A DNA stretch of 34,532 bases from Salpingoeca rosetta (GCA_033442325.1 JAWQFM010000004.1:2224238-2258769), one strand, 5' to 3'. Counted from the stretch's first letter, positions 20,962 through 32,229 are shown. Numbers and translations are program-made. Notes: a model not told the origin generated them from the sequence alone.

Positions 20962-23900
20962 ATGGAGGTGCGCTGCATGCAAGTGCATGGCGTTTGTGTG
21001 ATTGTGGTTGTGTTCTCGTGTGTGTGTGTGTGGTTGTGTTCTCGCGTGCGTGTGCTTGTGTGTTTGCGTGAACGTGTATGTGTTTTCGTTTGTGTTTGCT
21101 TGTGTGTGTGTGTGATTGTGTATGTGTTTTCGTTTGTGTTTGCTTGTGCGCGTGTTTGTGTACAAGTGTGTACAAGTGTGTGCATGACTTGCCAAGGTCG
21201 GGCGTTGACAGTCGTGTCTGCACCTGCACGGCCGACTCACGCTGCGCGCATACATGCCCTTGTGTGCTGTGCAGCTTGAAGTGTGGACGTTCTGCGTCCG
21301 CTGTTTCCAGCGTGACCCGAGCCGCCCATGCCAGTACTGTGCAAGTCGCATTCCAGGAGATGACAACTGTGTCACTGCAGTCCTCTGGTCCTCGTCTTCC
21401 AAGCAACCACGCGTTTGGGTGCCTGTGCGGCCACCACCGGTACGAGTCACCACGACCATCACGACCACCACACCCACCACCTCGTGACCGCTGTCGACAC
21501 ACGCACACACACACACACATGTTTTTGTTGCTGCATTGTTCATTTTTTCATTCTAGAACAGCGCCTTGTGCTCACACCGCAATGTCTTGATCTCTGCATG
21601 TGCTGCTCCTTCTTGCGTTCACGTTCGGCATCAAAGACGACGCCGCAGGCCCAGTACATGGCGTGCCCGAAAGGGCGGCAGTGCGAGCACAAGATCACCT
21701 GCCCAAAGGCACATAGCAGCCCACCGGAAGCTGAAATCGCCTACTGGAACATTGAAGGTTTGTCGGCTGCAATGCTTGTGCCCTGGTGCCCTTTTCTCTC
21801 CTATTCACCCCGTGCCCTGGATTTCACTCACCATCACGCTCTCGCCATACGTTGCTGCCATGCTGTCTTCGGCACAATCGTTGCCATTGCAGCCCCGCCA
21901 ACCACGCGCCAGCGTACGCTGGACGCTGTTGTCTCCGTCTCCCCCACGCAAACGACGCACCTGGAGCAGCTGCTCACCCGCATCCTCAACATCGACTTGT
22001 AAGCAATGGCATGCGTGCTGTTGGTGTTGCTGTTCAGTCGTTCTTCAAAGTCGTGATTATATGTTCGACAGTGTGTGTTTGTGTGTGTGTGTGTTTGTTT
22101 GTTTGTGTGTGTTTGTGTGTGTGTGTGTGTTTGTGTGTGTTTGTGTTTGTTTGTTTGTGTGTGTGTGTGCGTGTGTGTTTGTGTTTGTGTGTATGTGTGT
22201 GCATGCACTGCTGTTGATATCATCACAATACAAGAAGGGGAGGGGCAATGTGGCGCGCCCGTTCATCATTGCGACACGGGTTCTTCTCATTGCATCATCC
22301 CATTCTCACCTGTCCCCAACTCTCCACCCATCCTTGCATCCACTTTGTCGTCATGCACTCATGCATTCATGCATTCATGCACTCATGCAACTACCCTTCT
22401 TTCCTGCCTTTCGCCCTAATCTTCCCCTTTTCAGCAAAACACCCGTCGGGCAGCGTCAGCTCAACAAAGCGTTTGCTCAGGCCATCGACACTGTTCCCCA
22501 GCTCTCCCCATACCTCGGTGCGGTACCTGTGATGATGACATGCTTGCAGGCAGTGGCCGGTGCTGTGCTTGCAGGCAATCATACTTGTTTTTGAGTGCAC
22601 AGCCATGACTGCACGTTTGAGGATGCTTCTTCCCTTCCTGTTTTTCTGCCACTCACGCCTTGCACGTGTGTATGTGTGTGTATGTGTGTGTGTGTATGTG
22701 GATGTATGTGCGTGTATGATTACTTCCCTCTTCGTCGTTCTTTGTCCTTCTTTGCCCCCCCCCCCGCCTTCTTCTCTGCCTTACCTCTGCGTGATTTGGC
22801 TGCTGGTGCGCAGAGACGCTCGGGTGGGATCCGCTGAAGAAGCATTTCCAGCCGCCGCCGTGGGACTCGTCAAACCTCATCCAGCTTCTCCTCGGCATCA
22901 CTGAAGGTCTGCATGCACTCTTTCGCACACACACACACACATGCCCTATGATGTTGATGGTGGTGGCAGTGTGAAAGTGGTTGCGTGTGTGAAAGTGTGA
23001 AAGTGTGTGAAGTGTGTGTGTGTTCTTTTCCGTGGTGTTGAGGGTACAGCAGACACGTTTTGAGTGCGCGCGTGTCTACGCATGCAAGCAAGAGAGAGGA
23101 CAACACCTGCTTGTGTGCTCATGTGTCACCGGTTGCGGTTGCTCTGGCTGCTGTGCTGTTGCCAGGGATGTCGATGGGTGAGCTGCGTGCAAGCGTCAAC
23201 GCGCTGCTGCGCGACGAAGGCCCGCTCGAGGGGAAATTCGTCCTCGCCCGCTTCTACAAGAAGCACAAGAAGGTGACCGACACTTACACCCAAGCAAGGG
23301 TGCCGTGTGAGCGCGTGGTGTTTGCGTGTGTGTGTGTGCACGTACAAGAAGGGAGGAGGCGTATGATTGGAAGCGAAGTGGGGCGCAATACCACGTGCGA
23401 CCGTTGTACCAGCACTCACATCAACTCAACTCACTCATGATCCTTCATGGTGTGTGCATGTGCGCAGCCGCTGAGCGTGCGCTCGCGGGACAAGCCCGGG
23501 CACGAGAAGCTGCGAGATGTGCTGTGGGACCTCAGCGACGAAATTGTCGTCTCAGAGGACAAGAAATCCTTCGTCATCCGCCTCAAGTCACAGTCAGTCG
23601 CGCGTGCTGCCAATTTGTGTGTGTGTGTGTGTGTGTGTGTGTGTGTGTGTGTGTGTGTGTGTGTGTGTGTGTGTGTGTGTGTGTGTGTGTGTGTGTGAAC
23701 TTGTGGGCACACAACAGTGTGGACTCGCTACTTGCGTTTGGCCCAGTGTCTTGCGCTGATTCATCACACAACTGACTCCATGTTGCACGCTGTCGTGTGC
23801 TAGGAGTGCGCGCATGCCGAAGAAACCAGCAAAGTCACCTGAGGTGAGCTTGAGGCAACAACTGACCGTACTGTTTTGTTTTTCTGGTTGCTCAGTTGAT

Positions 23901-29900: not shown

Positions 29901-32229
29901 CGTGTGCGTGTGCGTGTGCGTGTGCATGCGCGTGTGCGTGCGTGTGCGTGTGCGTGTGCGTGTGCGTGTGCGTGTGCGTGAAGTGCCCATCACCTCGACT
30001 CACTCAGTTTGCTTCACATTGCCATGCGATTTGAATGACGCATCACCGTATATGCGTGTTTAAACCTGTAATCCCTCTTTCCGCTTTAGTTTTCAAACCG
30101 CGGTGTGTGCCAGCACCTTCTGCAAGACCCGTCGCTTGAAATGAGCATGATCAACGCTAGCGGGAGCACATATCTCCACGAGGCCGCCACCACAGGCAGC
30201 ACCGCCGACCTGTCCTCTCTCATCACCAGGTTGGTGTGTGTAAAGTGTGTGTGTTTGTTTGTGTGTGTGTGTGTGTGTGTGTGTGTGTGTTTGTGTGTGT
30301 GTGTGTGTGTGTGTGTGTGTGTGTGTGTGTTTGTGTGTGTGTGTGTGTTTGTGTGTGTGTAAAGTGTGTGTGTGTGTAAAGTGTGTATGTTTGTGACTGC
30401 ATGAGTCAACTGCTTTCCTTTCCTTTGCTTTTTTTTTTTCTTTCGATGGCTCGTTTTCCTTCGATGGTTCTCTCTTCTTCTTCCATCCGCCTTCCCCCCT
30501 CCAAATGAGTGAGTTTGACACCGCGTGATGCTGGCCATGTGTGTTGCGTCTATCACACTGCTGCAGATGCTCCAACGATGTGCACGTGATGTGGAATTTG
30601 GACGGGCAGGCGCCAATTCACACCGCAATCTCATTCGGACACACCCACTTTGTCAAGCACTATCTCTCCTTGGTACGTGTGTGTGTGTGTGTGTGTGTGT
30701 GTGTGTGTGTGTGTGTGTGTGTGTGTGTGTGTGTGTGTGTGCGCGTGTGCATGTGTGCGTGTGCGTGTGTGTGCGTGTGCGTGTGTGTGCGTGTGCATGT
30801 GTGCGTGCGTGTGCGTGTGTGTGATCATGTCTCCAATTGGTGAGGTGGCTGTCAACCCACCCCTACTACTTCATCGGACGTGCACTCGTGTGTTCACATG
30901 TCAATGCCACATGTTGTTGCTTGCAGGCACCACACGTTGTCAATGTGCGCGCCAAGGACGGCAAAACGCCGCTTCTGCTTGCTGTGGATCGCCTGCACGC
31001 AGACATTGTCCAGGTGCGTGATTGGTCGCAGTGCGCGCGCGCGTGTGTGTGAGAGATGTGTGCGTGTGTGTGTGTGAGATGTGTGAGATGTGCGTGTGTG
31101 TGTGCCTGGCAGTTTTCTTTGCTGTTGTTACTCATGGAGCACACTTGCGTGCGATCAGCAGTTCCTAATGCCTCAAACCCAATTTGCTGCTGTTTCTTTC
31201 CCCTGTCTCGTTTCGCAATGTCTTATTGCCTGCAGGCATTGTTGGCTGTCCCCACCTGTGATCCAACGGCGCAGACAAGGACAGGCGACACCGCGCTCCA
31301 TATTGCTGTCAGACAGGCGGCTCCAAAGGTGTGCCTTCCTGTGTGTGTGTGTGTGTGTGTGTGTGTGTGTGTGTGTGTGTGTGTGTGTGTGTGTGTGTGT
31401 GTGTGTGTGTGTGTGTGTGTGTGTGTGTGTGTGTGTGTGTGTGTGTGTGAGACGGACGCGTGTGCTCACATTCCCACACGGACGCGTGTGCTCACATTCC
31501 CACCCACATGCACTGTGTGCTCGCTCTTGTGCGTGTTCCATCCCTCACCATCATCAATGATGTTGTTGTATTAACACCCCCCTCCCCTACAGCCGCTGTT
31601 GCAGCAGCTGGTGCAGCACATGAACGGGCTGTTGGACACCCAAAACGAAGCTGGTGATACACCACTCCACGTTGCGGCTGCATTTGATGTTCCCCATGCC
31701 ATCGACTTTCTCCTCCAACACGTGAGTGCGCCTGCGTGTGTGCACATTGTATTTGTTTGCCGTGCATGCATGCATGCATTTGTGTGCCTTTGTGTGCATT
31801 TGTATGCCACAAAGGCACGATTTGTGTTTTCGTCGTTCCCCACACACATGCTCCTCTTTTCCCATTCCCGACGTGACAAGCGCAAAGCAACTCCCATCCC
31901 TTATCCTTTCCCACACCCTCATCGCGCACCATCACCACCTGCAGGGTGCATCCTCGCACGTGCGGAACCGGGCTGGCCAGACGCCCGTTGCTGTATCGCA
32001 GCAGCAACAGCGGCACAACCACGGCATCATCTATGCACAGTACACGCGACGCTGCTCCAACTGCGGTATGCAGGATGGCACGCCCGGGGTGACACTGCGA
32101 AGCTGTGCCAACTGCCACACAAAGCTGTACTGCTCCAAGTCGTGCCAGGAGAAGGACTGGTACGCAAAGCACTCGCAGGAATGCGAGATGCTTCGGCAGC
32201 GGTATGAGGGGCAGCACGGCCCAGCGTGA
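20962..32229 (+). CDS. Large multidomain protein: ZC3H7-type Zn/CCCH, LOTUS(OST-HTH)-like, CCCH, HELZ/MOV10-type Ig-like, ankyrin repeats, low-complexity region, ankyrin repeats, zf-MYND (about 30 exons)
   Basis: Exons 21275-21439 (FCVRCF...WVPVRPPP) and 21649-21757 ([18 protein letters not shown]...EIAYW); 23166-23272 plus 23468-23592 (LOTUS-like); 24047-24152 plus 24424-24521 (WQFRTPP...[26 protein letters not shown]); 25355-26093 (Ig-like); ankyrin motifs [54 protein letters not shown]; MYND CSNC...CANC...[19 protein letters not shown]; stop at 32227-32229. The start exon (ATGGAG|gt) is tentative and the model crosses an N gap. Confidence 0.8.
24715..24958. other. Assembly gap (244 N) inside gene 6
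   Basis: Run of N. Confidence 1.
24959..25131. mobile_element. Possible end of an inserted element within a (CA)n tract
   Basis: Repeat-free, TA-rich sequence unlike the other introns. It ends abruptly (...TTTAATCGTCG) at a perfect (AC)n, and (CA)n also flanks the left side of the gap. Confidence 0.3.
32053..32184 (+). other. zf-MYND domain at the C terminus of gene 6
   Basis: Canonical CxxC...CxxC...YCxxxCQxxDWxxxHxxxC pattern. Confidence 0.95.

Follow-up and report, generated by a model that had tools for sequence, protein, structure and literature searches.

PTSG_02998 of the choanoflagellate Salpingoeca rosetta is encoded on the plus strand at positions 20962..32229 of the window analyzed here, a 34,532-nucleotide (nt) stretch of the genome assembly (GCA_033442325.1, JAWQFM010000004.1:2224238-2258769). 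It is the product of one real, expressed gene that forms a single unit. This deposited, uncharacterized protein is best called a new lineage-specific arrangement of known, mostly common modules. Its full domain order, seen in no other protein found here, comprises an N-terminal zinc motif, a CCCH finger, a helical and LOTUS-like part, a second CCCH finger, a coil, an Ig-like segment, ankyrin repeats, a disordered region, more ankyrin repeats, and a MYND finger. The firm new fact is an exon hidden in an assembly gap, which makes the public model of this protein incorrect. As for function, the combination of modules could make this protein of ~1,530 amino acids (aa) a non-enzymatic, RNA-binding post-transcriptional adaptor, a reading to which we give about an even chance. 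No living group is more closely related to animals than the choanoflagellates, and S. rosetta is genetically manipulable. PTSG_02998 could thus illuminate how animal ribonucleoprotein (RNP) scaffold architectures were assembled from older parts.

The 27 annotated exons, when joined, translate letter for letter into the 1474-aa deposited protein (XP_004996518.1, F2U3Z1), whose record name is “hypothetical protein” and whose locus is GL832960.1:1844748-1856015 in GCA_000188695.1. The coding sequence begins with the ATG at 20962, ends with the TGA at 32227-32229, and includes at least one more exon inside the assembly gap. These are exactly the limits given in a preliminary description of this DNA, which had also guessed, correctly, at a unicellular holozoan. 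Across ~21-32 kb, the plus strand consists of short open stretches split by introns whose donors read GTRCGT and whose acceptors read CAG. An Rfam scan of the window gave no match.

By its sequence, at least one of the CCCH fingers is of the TTP/ZC3H7A type, and probably both are. The better one is finger 2, whose module with conserved flanks occupies the exon 24047..24152 on the plus strand; the finger itself lies at 24092-24142 and has C298, C304, C310, and H314 as predicted ligands. phmmer searches of PDB match it to TTP (4.4e-5) and to ZC3H7A (2d9m, 1.9e-4). The latter alignment, of 48 aa, takes in the lead-in and the following helix, and the two proteins share a W-x-R-x-P lead-in and an AH..EL.EW helix. 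Finger 2 thus combines the C-x(4-15)-C-x(4-6)-C-x3-H spacing of C3H1 fingers with significant similarity to known members, at 18.5 bits against the Pfam zf-CCCH cut-off of 20.5. Finger 1 (21664..21714, plus strand; C67, C73, C79, and H83) has the spacing C-x5-C-x5-C-x3-H. Its Pfam match, to Nab2-zf4, is weak (E 0.02-0.03). In a single comparison its module aligns to that of finger 2 with an E of 4e-4, as a divergent copy of the latter. Of the two CCCH fingers described earlier, the second accordingly stands on its match to TTP, and the first is the weaker. The spacing in PTSG_02998 differs from the C-x8-C-x5-C-x3-H of ZC3H7A and TTP. In contrast to ZC3H7A/ZC3H7B and TTP, the protein has neither TPR repeats nor a C2H2 finger, and its remainder is unrelated to them.

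The N-terminal motif C-x2-C-x8-C-x2-C (aa 9-24; 21293..21340, plus strand), read directly from the sequence, is possibly a small zinc ribbon. It has no Pfam match, and in PDB it weakly matches a zinc-ribbon subunit of RNA polymerase (E 0.36). Residues 98-192, encoded by three exons at 21893..22906 (plus strand), make up a helical region. Finger 2 is followed by an exon predicted to form a long helix or coil (24424..24521, plus strand), which an RNA joint connects from 24152 to 24424 and which AlphaFold2 (AF2) models as a helix with low confidence. The HELZ-type N-terminal module proposed in the preliminary description comes down, in the comparisons made, to a ZC3H7A/TTP-type CCCH finger with a flanking helix. 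HELZ has a CCCH finger and then a helix as well. In contrast to HELZ, PTSG_02998 shows no SF1 helicase core, with its two RecA-like domains, in Pfam, and its gap holds only ~54 aa.

The segment between the two fingers (aa 192-269; two exons at 23166..23592, plus strand) is a candidate winged helix of the LOTUS/OST-HTH kind. The AF2 model of residues 1-285, built without an alignment, has a predicted local distance difference test (pLDDT) score of 52 overall and of ~57-81 over residues 190-266. Within aa 195-266 it places helices at 195-209, 212-224, and 237-249 and strands at 250-255 and 262-266, three helices and a hairpin in the order of a winged helix. An Atlas feature search, which compares language-model features and in which scores below 0.9 count as leads only, puts OST-HTH (0.84 and 0.81) and WHD_Egal of Egalitarian (0.80) on top. 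The Ghxph motif is partly kept, as G-H-E-K-L. The OST-HTH family PF12872 has no match up to an E of 10, in the spliced protein and in the segment alike. A sequence comparison of the segment with PDB found no match, and the low-confidence model gave nothing beyond background in Foldseek PDB, VIA wide, and Atlas shape searches. The LOTUS label, proposed earlier, therefore goes unconfirmed by Pfam and PDB, with language-model leads in its favor; on balance, the segment leans slightly toward being LOTUS.

The OST-HTH domain is typically fused to domains that bind RNA or serve as anchors; its fusions to CCCH fingers and, in plants, to ankyrin repeats were described in 2010, and choanoflagellates are among the lineages that bear it (PMC2848206). 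PTSG_02998 resembles the LOTUS/OST-HTH proteins Oskar, TDRD5, TDRD7, and MARF1 in having a candidate winged helix beside RNA-binding fingers and anchoring repeats. It differs from them in having no Tudor, NYN, or RRM domains and no PF12872 match.

The region from aa 351 to 471 of the deposited PTSG_02998, whose residue numbering is used throughout, encoded by four exons at 25355..26303 (plus strand) that are connected by RNA joints, is a β-rich, Ig/ASH-like candidate. An Atlas feature search with residues 351-452 returned Ig_NPHP4, Ig_CFAP47, ASH, and Hydin-like domains at 0.84-0.85. The segment has no Pfam match. The AF2 model of residues 280-505, again built without an alignment, has a pLDDT of 32 and is unusable; the query did not include the first ~54 aa. 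As with LOTUS, the Ig-like label in the preliminary description is left with language-model leads and is not confirmed. As a lead, it directs to ASH/PapD-like ciliary Ig domains and away from HELZ or MOV10.

The C-terminal part of the protein carries ankyrin repeats. In a Pfam search with the spliced protein, Ank_2 matches six stretches (2.3e-45), and Ank_4, Ank_5, Ank, and Ank_3 also score over their cut-offs. Motif counts give ~12 repeats in total, in agreement with the 12 to 13 reported earlier. Block 1 (aa ~500-660; five exons at 26559..28045, plus strand; Ank_2 at 505-599) has ~5 of them. Block 2 (aa ~1150-1416; seven exons at 29741..32052, plus strand), identified from Pfam Ank families and motifs, has ~7, mostly with one repeat per exon, and includes an Ank_KRIT1 match at 1248-1335.

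The two blocks are separated by a disordered region, from aa 663 to ~1150 (28274..29740, plus strand), which is defined by its composition and lies inside the 1599-nt exon 28274-29872. It is rich in S (16%), A (12%), P (11%), Q (10%), G (8%), and H (6%), with 1.2% N and 9% charged residues, and the exon contains no Pfam domain. “Prion-like,” the term used for this region in the preliminary description, seems too strong for its composition: a prion-like domain is Q/N-rich and low in charge over 60 aa or more, and here N is scarce throughout and the richness in Q (21%), H (13%), P (13%), and M (8%) is confined to residues 663-830, the first ~170 aa.

The protein ends with a MYND zinc finger (aa 1417-1460; 32053..32184, plus strand) that retains all eight ligands of the C4-C2HC pattern. 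It matches zf-MYND (PF01753) with 7.5e-8 and 32.7 bits (cut-off, 22.7) in the spliced protein and with 4.6e-9 when the exon is searched alone. Its PDB matches are ANKMY1 (0.002), CBFA2T1/ETO (0.004), and DEAF1 (0.008). The same Pfam search of the spliced protein finds no enzyme family, no helicase, and no MORN repeats, in line with the absence of a catalytic domain noted earlier. Searched singly, the exons are too short to match Pfam families beyond Ank, MYND, and a weak CCCH. Taken together, these results bear out the order proposed at the outset, in which two CCCH fingers are followed by ankyrin repeats, a disordered region, further ankyrin repeats, and MYND.

ANKMY1 and ANKMY2 likewise have ankyrin repeats and then a C-terminal MYND finger. 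CCCH fingers and a disordered insert of 500 aa set PTSG_02998 apart from the ANKMY proteins, and the MORN repeats of ANKMY1 are missing from PTSG_02998. The similarity to ANKMY1 is limited to the MYND finger, with a weak match (E 0.002), and over ankyrin plus MYND it is below the level of orthology; the ankyrin block is not ANKMY1-specific. Generic ankyrin proteins are much better matches to the C-terminal 325 aa than ANKMY1, which falls outside the best 60. A word search with the same residues, restricted, like the other word searches, to targets 0.55-1.75 times the query length and insensitive to divergent choanoflagellate orthologues, gave generic ankyrin proteins only, with no MYND protein among the matches listed.

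In the same kind of search, the N-terminal 500 aa (targets of 811-2580 aa) retrieved PTSG_02998 itself only, and the disordered exon retrieved nothing. An exhaustive HMMER search covered the disordered exon, the N-terminal modules being compared by word search. Against 1.84 billion representatives, this 1599-nt exon recovered PTSG_02998 at 100% identity plus one weak match and no clear relatives. No match came from NCBIfam or from scanning metagenomes with the N-terminal 350 aa. In these searches, no widespread family with the same architecture turned up, a result that would have spoken against the preliminary description. The parts have more precedent than suggested there, namely, OST-HTH with CCCH or ankyrin (PMC2848206) and ankyrin with MYND in ANKMY1.

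The properties of such modules elsewhere suggest how PTSG_02998 might work. TTP-type fingers bind single-stranded RNA, ankyrin repeats bind proteins, and the MYND fingers of ETO, BS69, and DEAF1 bind PxLxP-type peptides. In a post-transcriptional adaptor, the CCCH fingers in the N-terminal third would bind RNA, perhaps aided by the LOTUS-like winged helix between them, and partner proteins would be recruited by the rest, through the ankyrin blocks and the MYND finger. The disordered region may contribute multivalency. Jointly, these modules would anchor mRNAs or RNPs at partner complexes and thereby serve post-transcriptional control. The RNA-granule or condensate scaffold of the preliminary description is conjectural, and PTSG_02998 might form such granules. 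Self-binding of the MYND finger through PxLxP motifs was considered and rejected, as such motifs are not enriched.

Several points weigh against this assignment. The Pfam scores of the CCCH fingers are under the curated cut-offs, the LOTUS-like segment has neither a hidden Markov model match nor a structural one, and PxLxP occurs once in the disordered region, as expected by chance. No orthologue was found that might reveal conserved parts, the exhaustive search having been limited to the disordered exon, and a literature search returned no paper naming PTSG_02998. The predicted RNA binding and partner recruitment derive by analogy from the modules. Finally, proteins with MYND and ankyrin domains are nuclear co-repressors or cytoskeletal adaptors as often as they are RNA factors.

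The first of these roles has some appeal for PTSG_02998. As a nuclear transcription or chromatin co-repressor adaptor, it would use the MYND finger to recruit co-repressor-type partners, as ETO, DEAF1, and BS69 do, and the ankyrin repeats to bind chromatin proteins, with the CCCH fingers as accessories. The MYND finger matches CBFA2T1/ETO and DEAF1 almost equally to ANKMY1, and Q/H/P-rich regions are frequent in transcription regulators. However, finger 2, and probably finger 1, is of the RNA-binding type of TTP and ZC3H7A, the LOTUS-like lead points the same way, and Pfam shows no DNA-binding or chromatin-reader domain, which leaves this role unlikely.

The cytoskeletal alternative, slightly more doubtful still, is that of a flagellar or cytoskeletal anchor with an ANKMY1-like C terminus and a ciliary-type ASH Ig domain. 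ANKMY1 is the top solved match of the MYND finger, and its own MYND is also C-terminal (843-888 of 906); residues 351-452 are nearest to the Ig/ASH domains of CFAP47, NPHP4, and Hydin. Both signals are weak, as the E value and the feature scores given above indicate, and the preference of the C-terminal 325 aa for generic ankyrin proteins and the absence of MORN repeats in the Pfam scan argue against an ANKMY1-like anchor.

About equally doubtful is a more specific version of the RNA-binding adaptor, a pre-metazoan RNP-granule organizer. Here a true LOTUS domain, with a CCCH finger on either side, would be the part that binds RNA or a DEAD-box helicase, and assembly would be driven by the half of the protein from the first ankyrin block through the disordered region and the second block to MYND. 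If true, this would make PTSG_02998 a choanoflagellate counterpart of the germ-granule scaffolds of animals (Oskar, TDRD5/7, and MARF1) with different partner modules.

Very improbable, lastly, is a gene-model or assembly artefact in which a CCCH/LOTUS gene and an ankyrin/MYND gene were misjoined at the run of N letters: the annotated intron 24522-25367 does span this unsequenced gap, and the annotation is wrong there, but RNA contigs from two studies cross the gap with 154 extra letters, the phase fits, they run on for ~2.4 kb, and the open frame is continuous for ~4.6 kb.

The RNA evidence that PTSG_02998 is a single gene, as proposed earlier, and is not split at the gap comes from Logan contigs of two runs of different studies, compared with positions 21450-27449 of the window. 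The spliced contigs, of 4422 nt in run X4 and 3947 nt in run X5, have 14 GT..AG joints and cross 16 exons on both sides of the gap. On the plus strand and within single contigs, these are 21637-21757, 21893-21998, 22435-22517, and 22814-22906 in the 5' part; 23166-23272, 23468-23592, 23804-23843, 24047-24152, and 24424-24521 before the gap; 25355-25476, 25664-25746, 25995-26093, and 26232-26303 after it; and 26559-26702, 26931-27029, and 27192-27296 in the ankyrin part. The contig coordinates sum exactly for each stretch between aligned pieces, and single contigs span from 5' of 21439 to past 27296.

The ends of these contigs extend the picture in both directions. Window 21409-21438 is identical to the loose end before 21636, which puts the end of the upstream exon at 21439; the loose end after 27296 equals the window from 27595 onward. 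The X4 contig, whose word depth of 434 attests to expression, extends 2380 nt beyond 27296. The annotated exons through 31721 total 2379 nt, and this agreement indicates that the same contig takes in the whole disordered exon and the greater part of ankyrin block 2. For exons 27595-27705 and 27932-28045 the support is the match to the annotation, as the RNA joints run to 27296. In the raw stranded reads of run X21 the first mate is on the minus strand, which, as in most stranded libraries, places the RNA on the plus strand.

The first coding exon, 20962..20967 (plus strand), encodes just Met-Glu and is joined through the donor GAG/GTGCGC to 21275, in agreement with the annotated start of PTSG_02998. 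An in-frame stop lies 14 codons upstream, and an RNA contig reaches 113 nt further 5' of 21275. A gene model of our own, obtained by dynamic programming, was discarded: three of its borders contradicted RNA joints, it missed an RNA-supported exon, skipped a real ankyrin exon, and called a spurious one.

The assembly gap at 24715..24958 (plus strand) hides an exon of ~161 nt (~54 aa), as indicated by the contig surplus, zero RNA depth, and phase. In both contigs, window 24423-24526 corresponds to contig letters 3261-3364 and window 25353-25476 to letters 2983-3106. The 154 letters in between (3107-3260), which fall between 24526 and 25353, match nowhere in the window, and RNA depth is zero across 24650-25249. 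The splice sites on the two sides are the donor CAG/GTTCGG at 24521 and the acceptor AAG/G at 25355. Together with the ambiguous border letters (5 after 24521 and 2 before 25355), the 154 nt make an exon of 161 nt within the gap.

The phase at the end of exon 24424-24521 is 0, and exon 25355-25476, read backward from the ankyrin exons, needs two carried-over letters. Since 161 leaves a remainder of 2 when divided by 3, the reading frame is kept across the gap, and the open frame is uninterrupted for ~4.6 kb, with the hidden 161 nt assumed to contain no stop codon. A search elsewhere in the window for an exon that fits the hidden 161 nt found none. With room for only ~54 aa, the gap cannot hold a helicase or another large domain, a possibility raised in the preliminary description.

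The public model joins 24521 to 25368, and the RNA acceptor is 25355. The deposited PTSG_02998 is thus short by ~58 residues, and the true protein has ~1,532 aa, the hidden stretch being presumed stop-free. The practical outcome is a corrected model of PTSG_02998 with the gap-hidden exon and with the acceptor at 25355 instead of 25368. Long (CA)n runs on both flanks are the probable cause of the gap; across the 26 annotated introns (window 20968-31944), (TG)n or (CA)n runs of at least 5 units account for 15% of the letters.

The X4 and X5 contigs differ from the assembly at three positions within exons, 25439 (C to T, synonymous), 26636 (C to G, synonymous), and 26638 (C to T, Ser to Phe), of which the latter two differences are also seen in one raw X21 read. 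They could be strain variants or assembly errors. Both RNA and DNA-like contigs match introns at 22033, 22353, 26119, 26173, and 27187 and then diverge. Such loose ends could stem from dispersed repeats, from paralogous sequence, or from forms that are unspliced or alternative. A contig of depth 13 from run X1, which is probably DNA, joins 23272 to 26502 with 11 foreign letters in between, perhaps as a chimera of the assembly graph or through a structural variant.

PTSG_02998 is flanked by long open frames on the opposite strand. The one at 32710-33921 (minus strand) has no Pfam match. The other, at 18215-20221 (minus strand), overlaps an annotated 420-aa gene without a family, and its sole Pfam match is weak (DUF6857, E 0.001). 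A second gap of N letters in the window lies at 17624-17723. Outside the window, ~4.7 kb past the PTSG_02998 stop, the next-but-two downstream gene (L001:25938-28899, minus strand) encodes a YTH-domain protein of the N6-methyladenosine (m6A)-reader type, whose proximity may be a coincidence.

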